Below, one piece after another: positions 7,729-31,696 of a DNA stretch of 64,000 bases. The stretch's first letter is position 1. Each line of letters opens with the position of its first letter. Below the pieces are notes generated by a model. The model worked only from the letters and a program-made list of their open reading frames with translations. It was not told the DNA's origin and ran no database searches. Made by a program: the position numbers and the translations under genes. The DNA comes from Blepharisma stoltei ATCC 30299 (lineage: Eukaryota; Protista; Ciliophora): NCBI GenBank assembly GCA_965603825.1, contig CBFDEM010000022.1, forward strand, positions 248,001-312,000. The letters are read 5' to 3'.

Positions 7729-8120
7729 ATTATTTAAGAAAGAAAAATAATTTTATATTATTTGCTAAATACATTAGAAATAATTTAAATTAAATTTTTT
7801 GGTGCTAAAATACGAGCAAACTTTATATTTCTTTACTCAAATCCGCCAAAATAAAAAATGTTTTATTATTCTCCACTCCGGTAAAGAAAGTTAAATGTTT
7901 AAATAACTTAAATATGGAAATAAGGCTTAAATAAAGTCATCGATTTAAATTTAAAAAGAATTTAAAAAACTCAAATAAGCCAACCTACAAAAGCCTTAAT
8001 AAAATAGCCAAAATAATCTCGTTACAAATTGAGGCCAAAAAAATTCTTAAAAAATTCGTTTAACAGTTGTTAAGAAATGAGCTACTGCAATGATGCCATG
8101 GTGATTTTTCATATTTATAA

Positions 8121-9317
8121 ATGACAAAATATTATCTTCTATGCATTTACCTAATCGCAAGCTCTGTCTATAGCTGTAATAGTATTTGCTTCTCATGCTC
8201 AACAATAATTGGAACTTGAATAGTCAATAATTGCACAAATGCATACTGCCGAGCAAAAGATACTGACTGCAATAATAGCTGTTCAATATGCACTGATGAA
8301 AATCTCCCTATCCCATGCGGGATTATTTCAGCCTCTCATACGAAATGTAAGAATCTTCCAGTAATTTTTATTTAGAGTATATGTGGTGGTGACGTGAGCA
8401 TATTTACGACCCAATCAGGCATAGTAGAAATTTCTCCAAAAATAAACCAATTTCAAGTTTGTGAATGGTATATAGACAGCAGAAACTCATTTTCTTCTAA
8501 AGAGAATCATTATATTGATGTTAAAATTGTATTTCAAGATGTGAATCCAAATGATATGGTATATTTTATGTAGAATATAGGCAATTTGACAATATGAGCC
8601 TATGATGTTGATTCTTCTGATGCATCTCCAAACCTAAGCTCTTTGTCCCCTTTGAAATTCCAATTGCAGCCAGATAACGTAGCGTCCATGACTTCTGAAA
8701 GGCTAATTAAATCAAATTATTTAATAATTGATTATATCACTGGGAACTCGTACGATTCATATGCTGGGATTCATATATCATGAGTTGCACAAATAAATTC
8801 ATCAGGTGGGAGTAATAATAATCAACTATTAACTATAGTTGCTTTAACTCTTTCTATTTTTTTTACACTCGCTTGCAGTATAGCAGTCGCATGAAGAATC
8901 ATTCGAACAATTAGAAGGAGAGATAGAGTAATAGATGGGGCAAGAGTAGTATATCCTCAAACCATGGGGAGAGCTAGAGAATATGAGGCAATTCCTGACG
9001 ATTCAGCTATAATTTTATCAGAAGAAAATATTGAGAGATATATGCCAAAAACAAAATATGTGGAAGGTTTAGTAGAGATTGGTGAATGCACTTGTTGTGT
9101 TTGCTTTGAAGAGTAAGAGGTATTTAGATTCAAAGCTAATAGTGAAGCTAGAAAACTTCTGTGTAGGCACGTTTATCACGCATCGTGCATAGAGGATTGG
9201 TTAGTGTCACAAGGAGGGATCCCAAAATGCCCATTGTGTAAATGCAATCCATTTCAGCCTCTATTTGATAACTCATCTGATATTAATGAAGGGGTAAGGT
9301 CAGAAAACCCAGATTAA
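8121..9317 (+). CDS. Signal peptide, Cys-rich/CUB-like ectodomain, one TM helix, RING-H2 E3 ligase
   Basis: Absent from the ORF track. Reconstructed with 15-nt introns 8361-8375, 8559-8573 and 9113-9127 plus four TGA=W. MTKYYLLCIYLIASSVYS; CGG..QSGIVEISP..CEWYI; TM LLTIVALTLSIFFTLACSIAVAW; CCVCFEEF..LLCRHVYHASCIEDWL..CPLC. Confidence 0.85.
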
Positions 9318-9741
9318 TAAGCTTTGGTTCAATAATTCTTCCTTTCAAAATAAAACTGGGAGTGCAAGTTTAAATTATCTTCTATGATAAATTTCATTTA
9401 TAGACATTTTAAAGAATTAATCATTTAATATTTAAAAAAAGAAAATCATTAATAAAAATTTAATTTCTTGAAATATAATATTAATTACATAGAAAAAGTG
9501 CTATACTTTTTCTCTGGGGCATATTTAAGGCTTATTAAAAAGAGATTATTAAAAGAATTGAAAATAAAAAAAAATTTTAGGTTTTGAAGAATAAGGCTAT
9601 TTTTACGATTTTTTAAGCATTTGATAATAGCATCTCATGCTTCCTTTATTTTCAGGGTAGTTTAGTAAATTTGCAAGCCGCTTGCACCATATATGCAAAC
9701 TATTTTGAAAGAAATGATTAAATTTGGAAACTACTATAAAT

Positions 9742-11754
9742 ATGAGTGGAAGTGCAGATAAATTTAAGCCAAGCAGTAATCGCTATTCAAATCCGAAGTC
9801 TAATCCATACTTCCAAGAATCAAGCCAAAATCCATGGGAATCTCCTAAACCACTTCCAGCATACACTCCTAAATACCAATTTTCAACTTTAAATTCTTTG
9901 CCGGTTCGCCATACACAATCCAATTCTGCTCTAAATGAACCCCAGCACTCATGAACTGTCAATAGGCGGAGCCAACTTTCGTTAACTTCTCCTCAGAATA
10001 AAATGAGATCTCAAGAAATCAAAAATCAACTGGAAAATGAGCTAAAACGACTAGACGAAGATTTCACGTTTGATTATGATGAAGAGGTTTCTTTGATTCA
10101 ATCGGCGAAATATATTAAGCAGGCCGTCGATAAAATTATTTTTGAAAAACAGCAGGTCATTGAGCAGGGAAATAGATTATCGCAGAGACCACTTAGCATG
10201 GTAAGTGAAATAGGGAGTAATCCTTCAGCAATAGAAGAATTAAAATCAAGCTTAGAAAATCAAAATTTTCAAGCTTCTCAAGAATTGGAAAAAATTAAAA
10301 AAACTCAAAATCAGCTTAAGAGATATGAATCAATACTGAGGCAAAAAGAGAAAAACTTAAAAGACCAAGAAACTCATGTAAACTATGAAAAAGCTCAGGT
10401 TGAAAAAGAAAAAACAGAAATTCACCAAGAAAGAGACAAATTAGCATTTGAAAAAGAAGAAAACCAAAAGACTTTGACAATAATAAACGAAGAAAAGCAA
10501 AAACTCAATGCTCAAATGAACAGTTTAGATAATAAGTTTTTAGAAATCAAAGAAGCCTTAGGAGAGCTTGAAAGAGATCCAAAAAACCAGGCCAAAGGCT
10601 CTCTTGATGAATTTGAGCAACAAAGACTTGACTTTTTAATGGAATGTGAAGAAAAAGCTGAATGGATAGCAAAAGCTGAAGAAAGCTTAAATACAAAAGA
10701 AAGGATTTTAGCCGAACAACAAGAAGAATTAGGCCAGCTCTCTCAATCTTTACAGCAGCTTAAAGATGAAATGGAAAGTCAGCAGGAAGCCATATCCTCA
10801 AATCTCGAGTTACAGTCAAAGTCAATTCAAAATGAGTCAAAGTTGCTAGAAGATAAAAAAAAAGAAATCGAGTCAACCTTAAAGATCCTCAATGAAAAGC
10901 TAAAAACAGTCGAAGCCCTTGAAAAAGGCTTAGAAGAACAAAAAAGAATCAGAGAAAACGAAGAGCAAAAGCTTAAAGAGCATTATATCGTTAAGCTAGA
11001 CGAAGCAATAAAAATGAATGAAGAAGCTCAAGAAAACATGAAACTTTTGGCTGAAAAAGAAGCATTTATTGATGAAATTATTCAAAAAATCAAGGAGGAA
11101 GAAATTGAGCTGGAAAATAGATGAAAATATTTAGAAGATGTAGAGAAGATGAAAGAAGAATTAGAAAAAGTAAGAATGATGTATGAAGAAGCCAATAATG
11201 AGCTAAAGAAAAGAGATGAAAAGCAGCAGGAGCTGATCAAAGAAATCCAAGAAAGAGAAGATAAAGTTCTTCTCAGAGAGAATCAAGGGAATAATGGAGC
11301 TACACAGTCAAACGAGAGAATAGAAGAACTTTATAACAGCTTAGAAGAGAAACTCCAATTTATTTTGCAAAAAGAATCTGAGCTGCAAAAAATGCAAGAA
11401 TATATTGAAAAAGACCGAGAAGATATCGACAAAACTGCTGATTTGCTACAAAAAATCCATAGTGAGCTCAGTGAGCAGCGTGAGCTCCAAACCTTAGAAC
11501 AAGAAAAAATAAAGTTAGACAAGAAAAAGATCTTAGACATGCTTGAAAGATTGAATGAAGAAAGCCTAAATATCAAGGCCAAAGAAGAAGAGCTGCTTGA
11601 AAAAGAAGAATTTTTGAACTCAAAAGAAGTCGAGCTCCTAGAAAAAGAAAGCGACATTGTCAAGAAAAGCCATGGCTCTATTGAAAAAGAGAGTGAAAGC
11701 GAAGAAAAGCCAGAAGATAACGTAAAAGATGGGTCTCAGCCTGAAGAAAGTTAA
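9742..11754 (+). CDS. Long coiled-coil protein
   Basis: Same-frame ORFs joined by TGA at 9952 and 11122. E/K/Q-rich heptads. Confidence 0.8.
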
Positions 11755-11777
11755 GTTAATTAACCATTATTTAATCA

Positions 11778-12749
11778 CTACAAGAATTTTAAGTTCTGCA
11801 TTATCGATCTAGAAAACTCGAAGTGCTCACTAGCTGTCATTTCAGCTTGAAGCTGAGGAGTTATGTCAGAAAGAGTGACAGGGTTTCCAAGGACGTTGAA
11901 TTTTTGTAAATTTTCATTGTTTTCGGTAACTTTTTTCCTCTTTTTGTTTCTCCTTTCAAATCTGTGATAATATCTCATTAAGTCTCTGTCAACGTCTTTG
12001 AGCTCTTCAGTGTCATCTCTTTTTTCTTCATCTGCTTCAGGAAGATTGACTGCAATTGTATAGTTTCTAGAGGATCCATCTACAATAGGAGCAGCCCTAT
12101 ATGATTGTGCACGATTTGCAGGTCTTGGCTCATCGATTACGTCAGGCATGATCCCAAAAAATGAAGGCGGCAAGTCAATATTTAGGCAGTTCCTCATTTG
12201 ACTTTCCAATAGCCTAATTTGCTGTATCCCTCTGTCTCTCTGATCGAGTGCTTCTGTGACATTTAAAAGTTTTTGGACTAAAGGTGATCCCTGACAGAAA
12301 TTACATGTAAATCGAGATATAGCCGCATCTTCGACAGAATAATCCCTATGACATTTTTCACATTTATATAGAATTTGCCTTGCATCATCAACCAATTTCT
12401 CGAGGGATTCCTTAAGATCCACAATTCTGCAGCATATCACATTTTTGATATCAGGATTAAACCCCCAATAAACCATTTTCCCAATGTCTGGTCCTCTCGT
12501 AAACATATTTCCGCTTCTTTCCTCATGTCTCCTATCTCTTCTTCCTTCTCTACATATCAAAATGCTGTTTTCCCCCATTTCAATTAAAGCTTGTCTTACT
12601 CTTTTGAAAGGAAGATTTAAAGCTTCCGACATTTGATGTTCCTCAACATTTTTGTAATAAAGAATATAGTCAAGAACTACAATGGCTGCTTCATCATAAA
12701 ATGTGCGAATAACTATCTTGAGAAGGTCTTCAAAAAGCTTTAAAGACAT
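11778..12749 (-). CDS. GTF2E1: Transcription initiation factor IIE alpha subunit
   Basis: N-terminal winged helix (VIRTFYD..IVVLDYIL..EEHQMSEALNL..KRVR) followed by zinc ribbon YKCEKC..FTCNFC. Confidence 0.8.
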   Translation of the reverse strand: MSLKLFEDLLKIVIRTFYDEAAIVVLDYILYYKNVEEHQMSEALNLPFKRVRQALIEMGENSILICREGRRDRRHEERSGNMFTRGPDIGKMVYWGFNPDIKNVICCRIVDLKESLEKLVDDARQILYKCEKCHRDYSVEDAAISRFTCNFCQGSPLVQKLLNVTEALDQRDRGIQQIRLLESQMRNCLNIDLPPSFFGIMPDVIDEPRPANRAQSYRAAPIVDGSSRNYTIAVNLPEADEEKRDDTEELKDVDRDLMRYYHRFERRNKKRKKVTENNENLQKFNVLGNPVTLSDITPQLQAEMTASEHFEFSRSIMQNLKFL

Positions 12750-12779
12750 TTATTATAAGATTTTATTTATTAAATAAAC

Positions 12780-13280
12780 ATGTCAAGTTATATTTTGTTT
12801 GAAGAAAATAACGATGAAACACCAAGTAGGCTGAAATTTAACCCTATGGTCGAAGTCACAGAGTTTGAGCAAGAAGAAAGGGAAAGGGGGGGGATTAGTG
12901 AGATAGATGGAAAAGTTCTAAGAAGCAGCAAACATTATAAGAAGTCTGGAGATTGGCTTAAAGAAAGAGAAAAAGCAATAAGTTTGAATAGGAAAACGAA
13001 AAATTCAGTTAAGGAGAGGGTCAATTCAAAGCTTAAATCGCTGTCTCCTTTAAGAGTTTCAAGCAATTCATGCTATAGGAGAAAAGATAATGTGTCATCT
13101 CGGAGAAGCACAAATTATTCTATTAGGATAAATAGCAAAGGAAAATCAATGGTTCAATCACCAATGCTCAGGACAAGAAAAGGGAGGATGAGGGATTCAA
13201 TAAGGAATAGCATTGCTGCCTTGACTCAAATATATGGGTCTAGAAATTCAAAATGTTCAGAAACTTTTCAAAAATACTAA
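12780..13280 (+). CDS. Hypothetical basic, low-complexity protein
   Basis: 166-aa ATG-TAA ORF with purine-rich coding bias. LKFNPMVEV resembles an RVxF-like motif (weak). Confidence 0.6.
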   Translation: MSSYILFEENNDETPSRLKFNPMVEVTEFEQEERERGGISEIDGKVLRSSKHYKKSGDWLKEREKAISLNRKTKNSVKERVNSKLKSLSPLRVSSNSCYRRKDNVSSRRSTNYSIRINSKGKSMVQSPMLRTRKGRMRDSIRNSIAALTQIYGSRNSKCSETFQKY

Positions 13281-13478
13281 TGAAAAACTACCTAGAATAT
13301 TTGTAACTATTATATAACAGTTTTCAGCATATATTAAATAAACATTTAAGCATATATTTATTAGAAAGTTTATTTTTCAAGCATCTTTACCAAAAAATAC
13401 AATTATTATGTTTTGCATTTTATCATGAAAAGATTTAATTTAATTATCTAAAATTTCACTAAGAACACGAATAAAAAT

Positions 13479-15155
13479 ATGTATAAAAATGTGGAAGATG
13501 CAATTAAAATAGAATCTAATCCTGATTTAGAATTATATTTTCAGTGAGCAAGGGCACATGAAATTAGATGAGATAAAATTGAATATCCTGTCCTTTTCCC
13601 TCCCGGATATATAGGATCTAGAGCCATTGCTTCTATAGAGCCTGAAGAATCGATCATCACAGTTCCTAACAATATGCTGATTACTACCAAAATTGCGTTT
13701 TTAAGCGAAATAAAACACATTTACGAAGAAAATCCAGATTTATTCAGTAAAATCAATCCTCGATACGAAGAGCTTATTTTGATCACTTTTCTAATATGAG
13801 AGAAATGCAAGGGATCTAATTCTGTTTGGTATGAATTCATTATATCTCAGCCTGTGCAAGTTGAAATCTTACAAGATTGGTCTATTGAAGAAATTCAGCA
13901 ACTTCAAGATGAAGATTTAGAATATGAAGTAAAATAAATTTAGTCACAATCACAACTTTCAGCTGAAATAAAGCTGTATTCAGATTGGAAACAAGCAATT
14001 GAAAAATACCCTCAATATTTCCAACCAAACATGCTAGATTATGCAGAATTTAACTGGGCGTATAAGCTCATAGGCACAAGAGCATTCGTAAAATTCGTCC
14101 CGCATTGAACTTTGGCACCAATAGCAGAGCTTCTTAACCATCATAATACAAGTACTTTTTATTGCTACAATTTTCCTAATGAGATCTCAGAATCATTATC
14201 AAGATATAATTACTTTGAAGAAGATGAAGACAATGATGAAGATTTTGCAGAGAAAATTCCTATTACAACAATAAACTGCAAGCAATTATTGTCTATTAAT
14301 AAAGATGGAAATGAAAATATTGATGAATCATTGAGAATAAAATATGAAAAGCTTATAAAAGAAGCTGAAAAAATTGATGATAATGAAAATGATGGAAGTA
14401 AAAAATATATAGAGATGAGAAAAGAAAGATATCAGCAGCCAAATATACTTTTAATAGAAAATGATGAAAAACAGCTGAAAATTGTTGCAGGGCTTAATGA
14501 CAGATATGAAGCTGGCTCAGAGGTATATATGAGTTACGGAAGAGATTCAAACAAAAGGCTTTTATCTGTCTATGGATTTTCTTTGAAAGATAATAAGTAT
14601 AATTATGCAAGAATCAAAGTCAATTTAACTGATCTATCAAGTAATCTGAATCAGATTCAATACATGATAAACTCTAGTCTTGATGGGATTTATGCATTTA
14701 AAATCAGGGAACGTCACTTATGTTTAGGTATTTCATATGCAGATCTTTTAAGAGTTATAAGAGCCCTTAAGTGGAGTAACAAATTCCCAGAAGCGGCTTT
14801 TTTCCTTCCAGCAAGCATTGACTTAGAAATTCAGACATTTGAGTATGCAAAAAATATTCTAAATAGATGAATCTCTCGTTATCCCACAACATATGAGCGT
14901 GATTTGGAGCTTCTTCAAGAAAACCCACCATTAAAACTGTATTTTGCTGTAAAGGATAATTAGTTAGTATATAGAAGTGAAGTCAAAAAAATATTGCTGA
15001 AGCAGATGCAGTTAATAGACATTATAATGAGACTCCTAATGAAATTAAAAATAGGAGCTGAAATAGAGCAAGCGTTAAATGAAGAACTCGAGAACTCTGA
15101 AGATGGATTAGGAAACAAAAGAGTTATTGAGGTATATTTAGATATGCTGAAATAA
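13479..15155 (+). CDS. SET-domain protein lysine methyltransferase, Rubisco-LSMT/SETD3/SETD6 type
   Basis: Introns 13929-13943, 14949-14963 and probably 14728-14742, plus five TGA=W. Motifs GSRAIASI..IITVP, FNWAY..IGTRAF, LAPIAELLNH, GSEVYMSYG..SNKRLLSVYGF, YPTTYERDL. Confidence 0.85.
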
Positions 15156-15277
15156 TTAGACAAAAACATAGGCATAATAGATCTTTTAACTATATTAATA
15201 AGAAAATTTTTTTAGGCATCCCATAAAAGAAGCTTTAAAACTTATTATACAAATTTGCTTTACTCCTCTATTTATAA

Positions 15278-22177
<6,900 letters not shown>

Positions 22178-22242: not shown

Positions 22243-23574
22243 TTAAACATCCTTTTTTTGCCCATTTTCCGTAAGTCTTCGATACTCTTCTTTGAGAGCA
22301 GCAATCGTCTGCTCATTTTTATAAGTATTAAATGCAATTTCAGAAATCTGCCTCTTGATATTATCCAAATCTCTTTTGAATTGGAATCTGAGAGAAAAGC
22401 TTGGGTCAGTTTCATCAGCAGTCTGAACTCCTTGAGAAATCATGTCAGCTGAAAACTGAGTCCCAGAATCCAGCTCTATATTCATCCCTTTTTCTTGTCC
22501 ACTGTCTTCACATGTCGTCTCTGAGCTTATCTCTTTCCTTTTCTTATATTTTTTCTTAGGAATGGTTTGATCTTGAAACGAACCAACAACCAAGCCTGTA
22601 ATGAAATCATTCTCTTCTGATGTCAAGTCACATGTTTTTATTTGAAGCCACATCCAAGAATGAAGCTTAATTTCATCTAAATTTGTATACCCAGTGCAAA
22701 GGTCAACTGGGAACTCAACATACTGCCCATCGGTGGTATTCCCTTTAAAAGCCCATTTACACGACAAAAACCCTACATTGAACACTGAAACTGGTGCTCT
22801 ACACTCTCTACAGACACAACTTTGAGCTTCGTTTAGGTATTCAAATGTCCCTCCATTGCCTAAATACACAAACTCTTTGGCTTTCAAAAGGGAGCAGGAA
22901 GGGTTTGTGCATTTTATCTCAAAATAGCAGCCAGCACTGATTGGCTGTTTTTGAGTAATTTTTAAGGAGGAATTAGATTTTACCTCATCAAAGGTAATTT
23001 CTATATTGTGGTCCGCAATAAAATTCTCCTTTTTGGAATTCACAGTATCTTTAATGCTGATACAACTTCTGATGAAGGAGATAAAATGTCGGGTTTTTTG
23101 GTCCTCATCACCAGCCTCAAGAGAAGGCTCATAAATGCTAAGTCAATGGCTCATAGTTTCTCGGAAGATGGATTTAGACAGAAGTCTATCAAGAAACTCA
23201 TAAGACATCGATTTAAAGCGCTCATCGGAATAGACATTGTCTGGGTTCAAGGTCTTAATCCAGTTCCAGAATTTAATTTCCTTCGGATCTGTTCGCATTT
23301 GCTTGGCATTCCATGCGAAAAAGTTCCTGAGGATCTTTTTCCTTTGGTGTTCTTTCTCCTTTGGCCCTACTTTTGAGAGCAGAGTTTTCTCCATAAGTCT
23401 TTTCTCCTGCCTATATGAAAATTACGCTTGGATTTTATTTCGAGGACACGAACGATAGTAATGCCCCAAGTTCGAGAGCTCCGCCTCGGTCTTAATTTGG
23501 AATTCTGACGAAATTTCTTTGGTTTTTTCGTCCTTAACCACAGTCATGGCTGCTTGAGAATTTGCTCCAATCAT
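22243..23574 (-). CDS. Hypothetical protein with Cys-rich putative zinc-binding domain and C-terminal coiled coil
   Basis: 15-nt intron 23411-23425 (gtaattttcatatag on minus) and TGA at 23143-23145 join three ORFs. GCYFEIKCTNPSC...CVCREC..VGFLSCKWAFKG. Confidence 0.75.
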
Positions 23575-23736
23575 ATTTATATGTCGTAATTTTCGCCAGT
23601 CACTGGCTATTAACTTAAGGGATTTAAATTGGATTTTAATTGTTTGCAATTCTTTGAAGAAAAATTAAGAAAATAAGTGCTTGGAAATAAAATAAAAAAT
23701 ACATTAGGCTTAAATTATTATATGTAAAAAATCTAA

Positions 23737-23834
23737 TTATGGAACAAAAAAAGAATAAAGCGGTTACGGTATTTTTGAAGTGATTATAGATCAAAAAGCT
23801 AAGTATTTAGAATAAATAAATATTTGTTCCATAA
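23737..23834. repeat. Perfect 12-bp inverted repeat (ttatggaacaaa ... tttgttccataa) enclosing a TA-bounded segment
   Basis: Arms at 23737-23748 and 23823-23834, read directly. Confidence 0.6.
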
Positions 23835-25111
23835 GGTTTTATATATAATTATTCAGAATTTCAAAAATTTTTGATTTGATAGTTCTGCTTTATCTACTAT
23901 CTACGTAATTAAAAGCCTTATAAGATCTACATTAGTCTAATCTATCAAAAGCTCTTTAAGAGCATTATTCAATAGTTTAAAAGAAGCATCTATTTAAATG
24001 CTAGAGATTGCAATAGCCATAACTAATCCATATTGTTTTGCTATGCTCTTCATATATTTTTGAAACTCTCATAAGACAATACAGAATTTTAATTTAAATT
24101 TTATATGAATTGAAGTATAATGGAGATATAGTCATCAATTTGAAGCCAATTATTCTAATTTAAAGAAATAGCTTAAGTATCGGTTAATTTTCCTAAATTT
24201 ATACTAATAAGCTCCATCCCTTTTTAAAATTAATTGAAAAGAATTTTTAAATATAAAAACCTCTTCAAGTTAAACTTACTAATAAAATTATGTTTAATAA
24301 AGAATAGTTTTTATTTAAGATGAGTTATTAATATTCTCCGTCTATTTCAACTTTTCAGAAAGTATATAATTAATAAAAATTTATGATAATTAAAATACCA
24401 ATTCGAATTAAATGCAACTATTATGATATTAAGAATAAATATAAAGTATATGCAATTTAATTAATTATTATGAATTTTAAAAAGGATTAAAATCTTATAA
24501 TGCCAAAAATTTAAGATTACTTTATCAACAAATTTATAAGGTTAAAGTGAAGGCATTCAGATACTAATCTCTGGTATTTGCACATTATTAAATTTATAAA
24601 ATTTCAATGGTTTAATCATTTTGATCTTTTCATCATGATCCACATTTTTCAAAATATTATAATATTTTTGATTTAATATACTAATAGATAGATAGCAATG
24701 AGTCTTAAAGTCTTTTTCTATATTATTTTGTTAATCTTATACCAATAATTCGCAAATATATTAAAAAGTAATCTTGTCTGATATTTTAATAAAAGCTAAA
24801 TATCTATTTGATTAATAGTTTATAAATGTTAGATAATAATTGTGAAGTCATTTTAGGATTATTTAAGAAAATCATCATCTCTTGTGCCTCAAATTTTTAT
24901 ACTATTTTCTCAAATCTTTTAATATTAAGAATAATGACGTATAAATGCCTATAATAGATATCAGATATTAATTTTTCTTTTAAAAATAAACTTTAATCCT
25001 ATCATTTATCATCAATTTTTTACCTATTCACTATCTATTTGATCTTATTAGCATCCACCTTTCTTGCCAAATTATTTTTTAATCATCCAAAATCCTCTTT
25101 ATTTAGATTAT

Positions 25112-26200
25112 ATGGCGTCTTTTCTCAGACATCAAACAGCATTATCTCCAAGTGCCCGTGGCAGTATCCGCTCAGGAGCTTCAGGCAGACACCATTCAAA
25201 GACTCTCCAATCTGCCCCTCACGGTAGTTCTGCTTTTTCTCGTATTTTTAGTGCAAAAAATATAACAAGCAACATTTTACCAAATTTCATGGTTTCAGAT
25301 CAAACAAAGAAAGGCCTGACTGAAGAAGAGCTTCAGAAGTTTAACCTAATGAACGCTATGTATTCAAACCCTCAAGAATCATTATCAAGGACGCAAGTAA
25401 TTTTCGAATCTCGGGAATCTCTAGGCAGATGTGCAACTGAAGGCGATCTTAAAGCAGATCTCCTAGCTCCAGAACCAGCCCAACGACAAAGTTTACCTAT
25501 TAATAATCGATTAAAGATAAGCACAGAAAAAATTGAAGAAATCAAAAAAATTGAAAAGGTTACTAGGGATATTTTTAACCCTACCCTTAAGCCCAGCGAA
25601 ACTATATTGTCGATAAGGAAAAGAGAGCTAAAGAGAGAGGACCTTGTTAAACTTAAAGAAGGCGTTGATTTACCTGAATGCATTGTGGATTGCTATTTAT
25701 CTATTCTTAAACACACAAATAGCTTGAGAATTAGATATACTCCAGGCGCTTTAAGGGTGCTAATTGCGAGCGCTAGTTTTAGCTCGATGGTATTTTTGAA
25801 AGGAAGAGAAATAGCACAGCCTAAATCAAACGTGTTTAAATACGATTTTTTATTGTTTCCAATCTTTGTAGGGTACTGAACACTTTTGATAGTGGATATG
25901 AAAAGAATGACAGTAAAGTATTATGATCCAGTTAAGGAGCATAAAACAGTTTCCATTGTAATGACAAGGCTAACAAAATTCATTCAAAAAGCAGCGCCAC
26001 GAGAGGACCAAAGAGTAAACACTAATTTTCAATTTATCCCAACACCAGTGCCAAATATCCATTTTACAGACAGCGGAGTATTTGTTTGCACCGAAGCAGA
26101 AAATATTGCATGCGGGAAAAATAATAAGGTTACTAAAGAATCAACAGATAATTATAGGAAAGATATGCTAGCAGCGCTAGTAAAAGCATCAAGCATATAA
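25112..26200 (+). CDS. Ulp1/SENP (peptidase C48)-like protein, catalytic residues substituted (gene A)
   Basis: TGA at 25877 = W. LKREDLVKLKEG..IVDCYL, FLLFPIFVGYWTLLIVD..VKYYDP, TDSGVFVC. The family HW and DCG motifs appear as YW and DSG. Confidence 0.8.
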
Positions 26201-26428
26201 TGAATGAAAGTATGTTATTTAATCAAACTATGCAAATAATAATTTTTAAAAGTAAAAATGAACTATTTGGGTTAGGAAACAAATTAAAAGTAAAACTCTT
26301 AAAAGTTACAGCAAAATATAAAAATTTGATAATTCGTATAAAAAATCCTATTTTGATTGTTAACTATGTAGATATATCCATTAAAAAATGATGGAGAATC
26401 ATTTAAGATATCAATAAACATATATTTC

Positions 26429-28361
26429 ATGGAAAGAAAATTTCATGAAGGGCAGTTAGTCTGGGCAAAAGTTGAAAGCCATCCTTGGTGGCCTGCAATC
26501 GTAAATTTTATTAAAGATTGATAGCATAGAAGAAAATAATCCTTCTGAGTTCGATGAAGTGCAAGAATTGAAAGGTACTATCACCGTCAATTTAATAGGC
26601 GAAAACAAATAGTAATTTATATGCAGCGCACACCTGTCTCCTGCAGAAATTGCTGATTATGAAGAAGCATATCGATTGCATTCCAATGCAAATGATGAGG
26701 TAAGGATTACCTAGAAACTTAAAAATTGTATCATAATTGCTAATAAATTTTTGGCAAAAGAAATTGACATCGCAAACCTTGAAGAAGTCAATACAAATTT
26801 GATTGCATTTTTACAGAAAAAGAAAGGGACACAAGAAGCGAGAGATCACGCGATTTCAGACGATGAAATCAAAAGAGTTGTAAAAGAAATAAATAAACAT
26901 TTAGACTCAAAAATAGCACTTAATGAACGGACAACAGATCTCAGTGGGCTATGTAGTAATTCTGATGCAATTAGACATAAACTTGAAGAATTCATGAAGC
27001 TTCTCACAATTTTTATTGACCATGCAGAGTCCACTTCACACTTTTTACCGGCCCTTGAGCTTTGCAACTGTCTATCATTTATTGTCCAAATAATCCCTGA
27101 CTCTTCACTATTAGAGGCTTCAAAAATCTTAAAATGCATTAAAACCTTTAAGAACAAACTCAAAGAAAGCTCAAATAGTCTTCTTAAATTTGTTTCACAT
27201 ATATGCCACAAACTTTATTTATTTTGGAAAAAAAGCTTAATTAATGCAAGTATTAAAAGCCTAGTTACTTCAGATAGGCAACAAATAAATAGACCAGATG
27301 AACAAGAAGCTTCATGGTCTTCTAGAAATTCAGCTTTTTCATCAAATTCCCATCAGGGACAAACGAAGAAAGTGCTTACTGGAGAGGACGTGAGAAAGTT
27401 TAATATGATGAACTCACTTAATGCAAATTCTCAAGAGCTTTTGAGAAGATATAAGTCTGGCACAAGCCCTTTGGCTGCTGCTTCACGTTTCCCTATGAGT
27501 CCAAGAGGGGAAAGAAAACCAAAAACAATGCCATTTACAGAGTCTCCTAGAAATAGTCTGGGTGATGCAAGATTTCTCAATTCCAGTTATTCTGATAAGC
27601 AGCTATTGCGACCCTCCAGTCCGAAAAGCTACACACGACAAAATGATCCCAGCTCTCCAAATGACATGATTTTAGTAATAGAATCAGACTCCCCAGAAGA
27701 AAACAAAAGGATTGAAGGAGTTGATAGAACCCACGATACCTCACAAATCCAAGAAGCACTATTAGCAATTCGCAAAAGGGAGTTAAAACGAGATGATCTC
27801 TCAAGATTGAGGGAGGGACAAGAATTGCCTGAAAGTTTAGTAGACTGCTACTTATCAATACTTAAGCATACCAACAGCTTAAGAGTCAGATATACTCCAG
27901 GTGCACCAAAAATTATGATTGCAAGTTCGAGCATAAGTAAAATGATTTTTATGAAAGGAAAAGAAATTTCTCAGCCAGAGCCAAAAATATTTAAGCATGA
28001 TTTTTTAATATTTCCAATTAACACAGGCTATTGGACACTACTGATTGTTGATTTGAAAAATGTGGTCGTTAAATACTGTGATCCTGCTAAAGAGCATAGA
28101 TCGATCTCAGTGCTAATAGGGAAATTGGCGAGATTTATACAGAAAGCGACTCCAAAAGATTTGCCTAAGGTAAATACTAATTATCAGTTTGTGGCCACAC
28201 CAGTGCCTGATATCAATAGAGATGACACTGGAATTTATATTTGCAATGAAGTCGAAAATCTAGCTTGTGGAAAGCAAAATATAATAAATAGAGAAACGGG
28301 TGATAATTATAGAAAAAGCATGCTTCTTTCGCTTGTTAAAGCTTCAGGAGCAGGCGTATAA
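26429..28361 (+). CDS. PWWP domain, helical domain and inactive Ulp1/SENP-like domain (chimeric gene B)
   Basis: Introns 26501-26516 (16 nt), 26612-26626 and 26700-26714. GQLVWAKVESHPWWPAI. C-terminus is paralogous to gene A (GYWTLLIVD, DDTGIYIC). Confidence 0.85.
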
Positions 28362-28449
28362 GCAGAAAAGTGGCTATTAAGTATTTTTATTTATTTTTAA
28401 GATAATAGTGTCCCAGGTTAAAAATGATGAGTTAATATAGATTCTTAAA

Positions 28450-29784
28450 ATGGAACGAAAGTTCTATAATGGGCAGTTGGTTTGGGCAAAAATAAAAACT
28501 TATCCATGGTGGCCAGCCATTGTATTATTAAATTAGGTTGGTAAAGTTGAACAAATAAATTTAGCAGAAACAGATGAAGAGCCCGAATATCAAGATGAAA
28601 TTACTGTTAATTTTATAGGTGAGAACACACAGTAATATCTATGCAGCGCTGCATTAGACACAAAAGAGGTTATGGATTATGAAGAAAACTACAAGCAATA
28701 CAGCAACGTGAAGCAAAAAGTATTTATTATTTAGAAACTTAAAAATTGCATTTTGATTGCTGATAAATTTTTATCAAAAGAACTCGATATTTCAGACTTA
28801 GTGGAAATAAATAGCCATTTATCGGATTATGTAGAAAAGTTCATTCCAAAATCAGATGAATCTGAACCTTCCTCTTCTCAGTCTGAGTCTGAATCTGAAG
28901 ATGAGCCAGAGCCGAAAAAAATCCAAAAAATTGATGAACCAGAAAACAATGGTAAAAATAGATTAAAAGAAGTTAGCAAACAGCTAGAGTCAAAAATTTC
29001 TCTGAGTGGAAAAGCAGCTGAGAATAGCCGTAAAAGAGAATTTGACAATATTAGTGCAAAAATCAACGATCTACGAAAAGGGCTATGCACCTATTTAAAT
29101 GATGATGAGGAAACTAAAGAGCCACTTTGTCCAATAAATGATATTTGTGATTATTTATCTTATTTAATTCAAAATACTCCTGATAGCTCGTTATTGGAAT
29201 CTTCAAAAATTTTAAAAGCTTTTAAGCTTTTTAAATCAGATCATATTAGCAGTCCAAATCAAAATTTAAGGTCTTTATCTGATATTTGTTACAAGCTGTA
29301 TTTATTTTGAAAAAGACATATTATTAACGAAAGCATTAAAAGCTTAATTGCTTCTCCAGTAAAAGCATCTTCAGCTAAAGCTTCTCCAGCTAAGTCTTCT
29401 CCTACTAAAGCTTCTTCAAAACCTAAGTCACAAGAAAAAAAATATACGCCAAAAAAGGCACCTGCAAAAAAAAACTCTAAAAAATCTCCTAAAAAAGTGG
29501 AAAAAGAAGAAGCAAAGCAAACCCATAAACCTTCATCCATTGGTACTACAGATTTTGAATTAAGAAAAAAAGTATGCAGAAAAATCGCCAAAATAATTGA
29601 AGATAGAGGGATCCCCAAAAATCAGTCTCAAGATCATGCACTTGAATTAGAAAAAATTATAAGGGCAAAGGATCCACATATGAAAGAGAAATATGTTGAA
29701 GCTTTTAAAGAGCTAAGAAAAAAGCTAACGAATGAAGGAAGAGATATTAGTGATATTATAAAAGAGTGTGAGAGGGATTTATAA
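28450..29784 (+). CDS. PWWP domain protein with SPxK-rich basic linker and TFIIS-central-like C-terminal helices (gene C)
   Basis: Introns 28522-28536, 28632-28646 and 28720-28734; TGA at 29308 = W. GQLVWAKIKTYPWWPAI; SPVK/SPAK/SPTK/SPKK; LRKKVCRKI..ALELEKII..KY. Confidence 0.85.
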
Positions 29785-29977: not shown

Positions 29978-31696
29978 ATGGATCTCGCATTAAATGATCT
30001 CCTTAATGATCACCAAATCAAAGATATTTTTCATAAAGAATCCCAAAAACAAAACATTACAGTTGATGGCATGCTTCCAACAATTCTTGACAGAATTTCA
30101 TCATTATATGGGCTTGATTTAGAAGGAGCTCAAGATTATTTCAGGAATCGCATTAATTTTGATGACGAAGAAGATATTATAGACCCATTGTAAGTTCTAT
30201 TCAGAATGATAACTTGGGAACAATTCCAATTAAGACTTGCTAATTTTTTAGCATATATTACAGGGACTGGTGAAACAGTTATAAAAAATATAAAGAAGAG
30301 ATCATCAAAACTCATAAAAAATACCCCAGCTACTGTAATTGAAAAAACCAATGAAAGCCGCTTTATAAGAAAAGGGACTCCAAGGATTATAAAGAGATCA
30401 ATAAAAGCTAGAAATTCAGAGTCACCTCCTAAAGTTTATTATGAAAAGCCGCAAGAACAACGGTCTTGAATATCCCCTTATTTAAACGAATATTTTGAAG
30501 ACCTAGTCGCAATTTTCCAGCAGCTTGACACAAAAAACCAGGGCATGATTGATGCAGGTGAGCTTAAAGAAGGCTTGAGAATGCTATTAAAAATCATGAA
30601 AGTAAAGAAAGATGGAGATTTGTTTTTGTTTGATAGAATGATAGAAAACAGATTTAAATTAATTCAACCAAACTCAAAAACGAGCTATAGCAAGGTGTCT
30701 TTGTATAGTATGATTGAAATTATTGAAGAGTGGGCATTAAAAGAGTCTTATAATAAAAATTCATTGAGGGAAGAACTAAAGAGCTCTATTGATGAGTATC
30801 AAGAGCTACTACAACAATTTCCTGCAGAAGAGGCAAAAGAAATTAGAGAATTAGTGAATTCTCTTAAAGAAATTGAAAAGAATTTATATGAATCTAAACC
30901 AGCCCAAGACTCTATGAGAGAAAAGCAAATAAAAGGATTGAAATTTATTTTCAATTTTTATGCAAGGCAGACCCAAATGTTTGGAAAATCGCCAACTTTT
31001 GATGAGCTAACAAAGATTAATAATATTTGAAACATCGGAAAATTTTTCAAATTCTGCACCGATTTCGGAATTATGGGCAAGCAAAATCAGTCAAGAAAGC
31101 TCTCCAAATCTGATTTAACACAAATTTTTCAAGTCTCTGCTGAAAATTCTTTAGCGATGAATGAAACCTCATTTATGGTAAAAGTCATTTAGAAAGCCCT
31201 TGACCAAATAGCAGATCTGTATTATAATAATCAATTTGATGCCCTTATGGGTGAGCACACAAGTAGTCTCAGTCTTGATTCCAAAAAATCCCTTCTTTAT
31301 CAATTTCTTGATTGCGGCGATTCTTCAATCTATATGCAAAAAGTTAAAGGCTTTGGTCTACCATTCAGTAGCCAAAAAGAAGGCTTTCGAATTGATCCCA
31401 ATGATTTAAGCAAAAATTATAAGCCAAAAATATCTGAAAAGCGAAAACAGCTGCTTCGACAATGAAAACAAAAAAAATTGACCCCAGATTTAAGGATTGA
31501 AAAATCACTTAAATTTCAAGAAAAAGGAGAAAAATCAATTATCGAGCCTAGAGAAAGAATACGATTAAACCGATCCGAAGAAATCCCTGAGCAAGAAAGC
31601 ATTACTTGGAATCAGTTGAACTATATGGACTTAAATAAATATTTAAAAGAAGAAGAATTCCAAATGCTTTTGCAAGAAGACGAAGAATTTTTGTAA
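29978..31696 (+). CDS. EF-hand / p25-alpha-like protein
   Basis: Introns 30190-30204 and 31178-31192; TGA at 30467, 31028 and 31463. EF loop DTKNQGMIDAGE. WNIGKFFKFCTDFGI..LTQIF..FMKALDQIA resembles TPPP/p25-alpha. Confidence 0.7.

Follow-up and report, generated by a model that had tools for sequence, protein, structure and literature searches.

Three adjacent genes on the forward (+) strand, referred to here as A, B and C, lie at positions 25112 to 29784 of a 64,000-nucleotide stretch of the genome of the heterotrich ciliate Blepharisma stoltei (the window; contig 22, positions 248001-312000, within a 41.5-Mb assembly of 64 contigs), and we describe here the middle gene, B, which joins the beginning of its downstream neighbour to the end of its upstream one. 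Gene A, the upstream parent (25112-26200, +), is a single exon of 362 amino acids with one in-frame TGA, read as Trp, at 25877, and belongs to a heterotrich family of Ulp1-like pseudo-proteases. It features the N-terminal motif of that family (SSAFSRIFSAKN....LP.FM, A residues 39-63, 25226-25300, +), which B does not have, followed by an Ulp1/SENP-like domain (25577-26197, +; Pfam Peptidase_C48, 34.3 bits in the piece 25880-26197). After the A-B spacer (26201-26428), gene B (26429-28361, +) encodes 628 amino acids in four exons. The first three (26429-26500, 26517-26611 and 26627-26699) encode a PWWP domain and are followed by introns of 16 (26501-26516), 15 (26612-26626) and again 15 nucleotides (26700-26714), and exon 4 (26715-28361) is an uninterrupted frame of 548 codons. 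The latter comprises a C-derived part (26715-27266, residues 81-264), a helical region ending in an invariant LYLFWK (from 27213), then a junction linker (27267-27359, residues 265-295) and finally an A-derived part (27360-28361), itself made of a linker (27360-27731) and an Ulp1-like domain (27732-28358). Gene C, the downstream parent, begins after the B-C spacer (28362-28449), which has no detectable homology to the A-B spacer; its four exons (28450-28521, 28537-28631, 28647-28719 and 28735-29784, +; 429 amino acids, TGA read as Trp at 29308) encode a PWWP domain, a helical region with a Leu-Trp (LW) motif, a linker rich in K, S and P and, at the C-terminus, a conserved helical domain. The in-frame TGA codons fall at conserved Trp positions, indicating that TGA encodes Trp, and both this code and the intron size of 15-16 nucleotides are given in the B. 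stoltei genome paper (PMC9942806). The spliced models of B and C are identical, letter for letter, to the annotated B. stoltei proteins P0001 and P0003, as which they were searched, and owing to the in-frame TGA the pieces of A and C were searched separately, exon by exon.

The two-parent make-up of B is evident from local alignments. Residues 296-624 of B match residues 64-360 of A at 49% identity (E=5e-101), and residues 1-264 match the beginning of C (E=1e-73; 46% identity across the truly homologous part); A and C, compared with each other, give no match. The introns of B and C occupy identical codons and phases (after codon 24, inside codon 56 and after codon 80), and Pfam places a PWWP domain at B 8-80 and a Peptidase_C48 domain at B 495-616, each over its curated cut-off. 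Between the two halves are 31 codons (27267-27359) that match neither parent, and the A-like part begins directly after the point at which the A-family N-terminal motif ends, Gln64 of A corresponding to Gln296 of B. The gene order A-B-C places the chimera between intact parents, with its 5' part derived from the downstream and its 3' part from the upstream one. An earlier sequence-only reading of the locus had taken B for the N-terminus of C (PWWP domain, three intron positions and helical region) continued by the C-terminus of A, including its Ulp1-like domain. Both assignments are upheld by these alignments and intron positions, and the junction that it had placed at about 27270 falls in the unassignable stretch. 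By contrast, the ttaaaaa(a)tgatg remnant that it had described upstream of both B and C could not be retained: the two spacers resemble each other at shuffle level (p=0.19), and the second copies of these genes, in an array on contig 58, lack the motif upstream.

That second array, A2-B2-C2, was found in a whole-genome search with exon 4 of B. Its genes share the exon structure of the first array and have intact frames (365, 609 and 424 amino acids); B2 was searched as database protein P0002, identical to its spliced model, and the joined model of C2, like that of the Cx gene described below, was used for local alignments and trees only, database searches being made at the exon level. The two arrays belong to a larger collinear block, at least 45 kb long and with no fewer than 13 pairs of paralogous genes (window 8.5-54 kb against contig 58, 713-758 kb; 52-92% protein identity, synonymous sites saturated), whose appearance is that of an old duplication of a large segment or of the whole genome; the text and supplement of the genome paper refer only to old segmental duplications of clustered gene families, in general terms (PMC9942806). 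Protein identities are 77% for A-A2, 73% for B-B2 and 58% for C-C2. As synonymous sites are saturated in every comparison (proportion of synonymous differences, pS, 0.70-0.82), synonymous divergence (dS) cannot be used for dating, and we used nonsynonymous divergence (dN), trees and protein identities instead. Between B and B2, the proportion of nonsynonymous differences (pN) is 0.17 versus a pS of 0.71, with a dN of 0.19 and a dN/dS of about 0.09, so that the selection which had been suspected from the intact frame of B is of the purifying kind. Resolved by module, identity and pN/pS are 71% and 0.26 for the PWWP domain, 76% and 0.17 for the helical region and 86% and 0.12 for the Ulp-like domain, a constraint no weaker than that seen for these modules in C-C2 and A-A2. 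The linkers change freely (pN/pS 0.45-0.6), the poorly conserved junction linker included (38% identity, pN/pS 0.6). These ratios indicate that all three folded modules of B have been under purifying selection since the block duplication. The presence of two copies, B and B2, in turn indicates that the fusion is old rather than recent and predates the duplicated block of at least 45 kb.

A relative preserves what appears to be the state before the fusion. P0004, which is the nearest A-like protein from outside B. stoltei, is encoded on a 24-kb contig (L020) that uses TGA for Trp, has 15-nucleotide introns and is syntenic with the window, with identities of 92% for PRP8, 61% for the gene at 22246-23421 and 66% for the gene at 30194-31189. 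On this contig an orthologue of A, Ax (10001-11050), is followed after 116 nucleotides by a complete orthologue of C, Cx (11167-12492), which has the same three introns as C as well as the C-terminal domain, and no B lies between them; this is exactly the A-C pair without B that had been expected of synteny in a related heterotrich. Upstream of this pair L020 carries genes for an RRM protein and ribosomal protein S8 (7786-9811), and downstream of it genes for a RhoGAP, an Exo_endo_phos protein and a Peptidase_M20 (12502-16498); all five are absent at the corresponding places of the window, where about 1.5 kb at 23600-25100 (28% G+C) held no open reading frame that matched the paralogous block or L020. 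The spliceosomal PRP8 gene, one long single open frame at 15278-22174 of the window and 92% identical to the L020 copy, has no copy that we could find in the paralogous stretch of contig 58 (694-771 kb searched), from which the duplicate appears to have been lost.

In maximum-likelihood (ML) trees computed separately for the two halves of B, as the sequence-only reading had proposed, each half nests with its own neighbour: A, A2, Ax, B and B2 form a clade in the tree of the Ulp-like half (support 99/99), and C, C2, Cx, B and B2 in that of the N-terminal half (100/99), and both clades exclude Stentor as well as the remaining B. stoltei paralogs. The two half-trees also pair B with B2 as sisters (100/100 in each). 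Independent fusions in the two arrays were considered as well and were rejected (p-AU, from the approximately unbiased test, below 1e-40). Outside the arrays, both parental architectures also occur on their own and are old. A-like proteins bearing the family's N-terminal motif are encoded on seven or more further contigs and occur as well in Stentor coeruleus and environmental relatives; C-like proteins that have the C-terminal domain missing from B are encoded on contigs 41 and 30 and by an MMETSP transcript, and the C-like paralogous loci have the same intron positions where these are readable. The nesting of B within the A and C clades, together with the sisterhood of B and B2, points to an origin of B from its local neighbours, once, and before the block duplication. 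For three genes, L020 is equidistant from both B. stoltei copies, which are nearer to each other, so that the L020 lineage must have split off before the block duplication. The L020 genes also fall outside the group of parents plus B (76/90 and 53/80 in the half-trees, 77/92 in the concatenated tree), and in identity the two halves of B lie nearer to A/A2 and C/C2, by 9 and 4 points, than they do to Ax/Cx. The fusion thus probably occurred after the split from the L020 lineage.

The branch lengths of these trees further show two phases in the history of B. The stem leading to B and B2 measures 0.74 changes per site in the Ulp half, 0.77 in the N-terminal half and 0.82 in the concatenated tree, at least four times the change in the parental lineages over the same interval (at most about 0.1-0.2), and the similar stem lengths of the two halves fit with a single event. 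After the block duplication, B and B2 evolved as slowly as the parents (tips of 0.19 versus 0.16-0.19). An early burst affecting both halves, followed by long purifying selection, is the pattern predicted by neofunctionalisation.

Transcription of B across the junction is supported by RNA-derived contigs from four sequencing runs. These contigs are arranged gene by gene, with A covered at 25123-26258, and the bin 26312-26475 at the A-B spacer is without any contig in all four runs. They skip 15-nucleotide introns at 26612, about 26700, 28522, 28632 and 28720, that is, introns 2 and 3 of B and all three introns of C, and their omission indicates that the contigs derive from spliced RNA. One spliced contig of 1,826 nucleotides (run X4, record 21; a contig, not a single read) covers 26517-28372, starting in PWWP exon 2, passing the junction and reaching the end of the Ulp-like domain, so that the transcript over the junction whose absence would have spoken against the chimera does exist. 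The contigs of the other three runs are interrupted at 27207-27238, a 32-nucleotide piece encoding LYLFWK, for which a graph branch shared with the paralogs is the likeliest cause. In run X3, a 30-nucleotide stretch of B (27896-27925) recurs in an unrelated contig whose depth is very high (about 4,100).

To which activities might the three modules of B contribute? The Ulp1-like domain matches PF02902 (Peptidase_C48) at 31.7 bits (cut-off 20.7) and SENP2 at E=3e-06, with substitutions at nearly every position of the active site: the catalytic His is replaced by Tyr519 (28029), the oxyanion Gln by Asp579 (28209) and the catalytic Cys by Thr585 (28227), Asp536 (28080) is the only triad residue kept, and the WLND motif of SENP2 reads ELPE. 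With these residues, the domain cannot act as a cysteine protease. The same is seen at A, with His replaced by Tyr255 (25874), Asp272 kept and Cys replaced by Ser321 (26072); throughout the A family, Stentor included, the Cys position is occupied by Ser, and the His is kept in one paralog only. Canonical SENP-like proteins in the same alignment retain both HW and QQN..DCG. This heterotrich family of Ulp1-like pseudo-proteases has many members, and no description of it was found in the papers searched. The consensus of its N-terminal motif is S-A-[FY]-x-R-I-[FY]-S-x-K-N, then L-P-x-F-[LM], and it is seen in paralogs on contigs 40, 55, 57, 46, 3, 34 and 54, in P0011 from Stentor and in environmental relatives, its bearers including loci L005, L006, L009, L010, L012, L014 and L015 and proteins P0006, P0009, P0011 and P0013. 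A complex prediction pairing the Ulp-like domain of B (P0001 400-628) with B. stoltei SUMO (L022:1438-1728) returned a score of 0.00, which is evidence neither way. The SUMO gene itself (L022 1438-1731; contig 21, 733806-734099) is a single exon of 97 amino acids ending in QTGGI, from which maturation would remove one residue.

The PWWP domain is recognised by PF00855 at 41.3 bits in B, 39.5 in B2 and 49.9 in C (cut-off 25.6), and exon 1 of B passes the PWWP threshold by itself. In NSD3 PWWP1 the aromatic cage consists of Tyr281, Trp284 and Phe312 (PMC8398374). The corresponding residues are Tyr18, Trp21 and Phe50 in C, and Tyr, Trp and Phe likewise in C2, Cx, P0008, P0010 and P0153; in B they are His18, Trp21 and Leu50, with the same His, Trp and Leu in B2. 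The alignment indicates that the PWWP domain of B lost two of the three methyl-lysine cage residues on the B stem and that the changes have been kept since. The suggestion of the sequence-only reading that B couples a histone mark, H3K36me, to the binding of SUMO or another ubiquitin-like protein (Ubl) is weakened on its histone side by this loss.

The helical region that follows was modelled by AlphaFold2 (AF2) with moderate confidence (predicted local distance difference test score, pLDDT, 76). Structural alignment with VIA-align gave Z values of 6.5 for 7faw (81/84 residues), 6.2 for 6t3i (83/86) and 5.9 for 5yi9, within a background of many unrelated helical hits at Z 6-8, and Foldseek against the PDB, run with two AF2 models of the region, returned E values of 1.3 or worse. 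Pfam searches with eight family members and a PDB profile search likewise yielded no match for this region. Atlas feature matches to Med26 and LEDGF reached 0.85, a lead only, and the Atlas search by shape was blank. A five-helix bundle of the TFIIS-N, LW or LEDGF integrase-binding domain (IBD) type would therefore be taken as a lead only. At the other end of C (window 29536-29784, C residues about 348-429), some 65 residues form a helical domain that is conserved in the family, with an invariant Cys, Glu, R-x-K-D-P-x-M, Tyr and Phe, and that found no Pfam or PDB-profile match. A resemblance to the central domain of TFIIS, raised by the motif pattern, was dropped, the PDB profile search having given no TFIIS-like match. 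This C-terminal domain was lost from B in the fusion.

The combination of PWWP and Ulp1-like domains appears to be confined to B and its copy. Among the 137 hits of a phmmer search with B against 1.84 billion representative proteins, only B2 covers both halves, the remaining multi-stretch hits being multi-PWWP or unrelated repeat proteins, and a word search with the junction (residues 190-430) against 5.8 billion clusters returned B and B2 only. No other fusion of PWWP and Peptidase_C48 was found in these representatives and clusters, in which Blepharisma relatives more than 50% identical or present as short fragments may be hidden. A first word search with exon 4 of B had found B, B2 and C only, missing A, A2 and Ax, and its blanks were not used. 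The fusion is thus not the ancestral and widespread one that had been considered as a challenge to its local birth. A literature search yielded no paper with both PWWP and Peptidase_C48, and PWWP, Ulp1 and SUMO go unmentioned in the B. stoltei genome paper and its supplement (PMC9942806).

Overall, we consider B to be a real, expressed chimeric gene that arose by tandem duplication across the A-C pair, is old, and most likely functions as a non-catalytic adaptor, an explanation to which, taken as a whole, we assign a probability of about 0.85. A stretch reaching from mid-A to mid-C would have been duplicated in tandem, converting an ancestral A-C pair into A-[C5'::A3']-C, before the block duplication that left arrays on contigs 22 and 58; this is the order that the sequence-only reading had attributed to a tandem duplication with intragenic breakpoints, and both the gene order and the nesting of the halves agree with it. 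C contributed exons 1-3, the first ~185 codons of exon 4 and presumably the promoter, and A the last ~330 codons and presumably the terminator, with the net effect that the A-family N-terminal motif was exchanged for a PWWP-plus-helical module. As the Ulp site is dead and two of the three cage residues are lost, B is most likely a non-catalytic adaptor, one that would link the partner of its pseudo-Ulp domain (SUMO, another Ubl or the A-family partner) to that of its C-type N-terminal module (DNA, nucleosomes or the partners of the helical domain). A more specific version, in which B would stand for an architecture unique so far (a PWWP domain without its cage, a helical LW-type module and a pseudo-SENP) and a dead SUMO-protease fold was turned into a non-catalytic binder of SUMO, another Ubl or a substrate and was re-targeted to chromatin or the transcription machinery by the fusion, strikes us as quite improbable; if true, it would tie SUMO signalling to chromatin in a way specific to the Blepharisma lineage, for instance while the macronucleus develops.

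Several observations weigh against this explanation or parts of it. The A-B and B-C spacers align with a local score of 17 versus a shuffle mean of 14.9 (p=0.19); a duplicated spacer is expected to be unrecognisable at such an age, synonymous sites being saturated, and with no spacer trace left a single-step duplication is indistinguishable from a duplication followed by a deletion. The RNA evidence consists of contigs from four runs of one study, from which expression levels are not derivable, and as the contigs of B start exactly at 26517, the splicing of its intron 1 and the use of its exon 1 are not seen directly. Finally, the alternative placement of the L020 genes is not significantly worse than the best one (p-AU 0.13-0.38).

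This last point bears on whether the same chimera was born earlier, before the split from L020, and was then lost in the L020 lineage. Such a loss could have come about, for instance, through an unequal crossing-over of A with B in their Ulp parts, still alike at the time, which would have restored A-C. A is nearer to Ax (64%) than to the C-terminal half of B (49%), and AU tests do not reject the groupings (A, A2, Ax) or (C, C2, Cx) to the exclusion of B (p=0.38 and 0.17, and 0.13 in the concatenated tree). The low identity between B and A is, however, explained by the rate burst on the long B stem, the L020 genes take an outside position in each of the three best ML trees, and each half of B is closer to its B. 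stoltei parent than to Ax or Cx, which makes the earlier birth unlikely in our view. Far less credible is a fission, in which a PWWP-Ulp fusion would be ancestral and A and C would derive from it by partial duplication or splitting. Gene order alone would allow this, being symmetrical as to direction; the standalone A-like proteins with their own motif in Stentor and many paralogs, the standalone C-like proteins with the C-terminal domain in several paralogs and the MMETSP transcript, the nesting of B within the youngest A and C subclades and the lack of any further fusion among 1.84e9 representatives leave very little room for it.

There is even less room for B as an artefact, be it a mis-assembly or a mis-annotated read-through of two genes. 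The contig breaks at 27207-27238, near the junction, in 3/4 runs could be taken to hint at one, but they coincide with the LYLFWK stretch common to the paralogs, as a graph assembler would give, while exon 4 is one uninterrupted 548-codon frame, the 1,826-nucleotide X4 contig spans 26517-28372 with overlapping contigs in other runs, and an independent copy, B2, has the same structure at 73% identity. With the local, single birth of B retained, its role could also be read in another manner. Since it shares its helical module with C and its pseudo-Ulp domain with A, B may act as a competitor that titrates their partners and tunes the A and C pathways. It retains the two best-conserved modules (helical 76% and Ulp 86% identical between B and B2) and is devoid of what distinguishes each parent: the N-terminal motif of A, the domain at the C-terminus of C, and the PWWP cage. 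The rate burst on the B stem in both modules rather suggests altered than identical binding surfaces, and we regard competition as conceivable but doubtful next to the adaptor role proposed above.

The birth of a gene by fusion is documented with unusual completeness at this locus of a deep-branching ciliate, and public data suffice to follow it: both parents are there, as are the chimera, a relative in the pre-duplication state, two later copies from which constraint can be read, and a junction transcript. Its analysis also revealed a heterotrich-wide family of Ulp1-like pseudo-proteases, a PWWP-helical family and a large collinear paralogous block in the macronuclear genome. The mechanism by which B was born is a known one, and its domain architecture is without other example in the libraries searched.

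Within its C-terminal 330 residues, B resembles the heterotrich pseudo-protease family (for example Stentor coeruleus OMJ94748.1/SteCoe_1927, which is P0011, and B. stoltei A, A2 and the paralogs on contigs 40, 55 and 57) in its match to the Peptidase_C48 fold with the catalytic Cys lost and the His mostly lost, and differs from it by a Thr rather than a Ser at the Cys position and by the PWWP-helical module that replaces the SAF.RIF...LP.F motif. The match to SENP2 and Ulp1 (PDB 1TGZ and 1EUV) extends over the whole catalytic domain, with the triad Asp and the Trp after the His position kept, whereas His is replaced by Tyr, Cys by Thr, the oxyanion Gln by Asp and WLND by ELPE. On the N-terminal side, the best solved relatives of the B PWWP domain include NSD3, LEDGF, HDGF and HRP2. 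LEDGF/p75 and HRP2 share with B an N-terminal PWWP domain followed by a helical bundle, which in those two is the IBD, a domain of the TFIIS N-terminal type, and in B ends in a Leu-Trp motif. The helical region of B can be aligned to the yeast LW domain and to the IBDs of HRP2 and LEDGF along the whole of each, at Z values of 5.9-6.5 that lie within helical-bundle noise. Unlike LEDGF/p75 and HRP2, B is fused to a pseudo-protease, and two of its cage residues are missing, unlike those of C.

As to its origin, chimeric genes are known to arise from tandem duplications that ignore gene boundaries, and Sdic of Drosophila melanogaster is a chimera of the neighbouring genes AnnX and Cdic. Like B, Sdic is a new gene lying between both of its parents, with one part from each and with the parents left intact. 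Unlike Sdic, B is old, with saturated synonymous sites, and was duplicated again together with its block; its junction is in frame and lies inside coding exons, it has undergone no tandem amplification, and a relative exists in which the A-C pair remains unduplicated.

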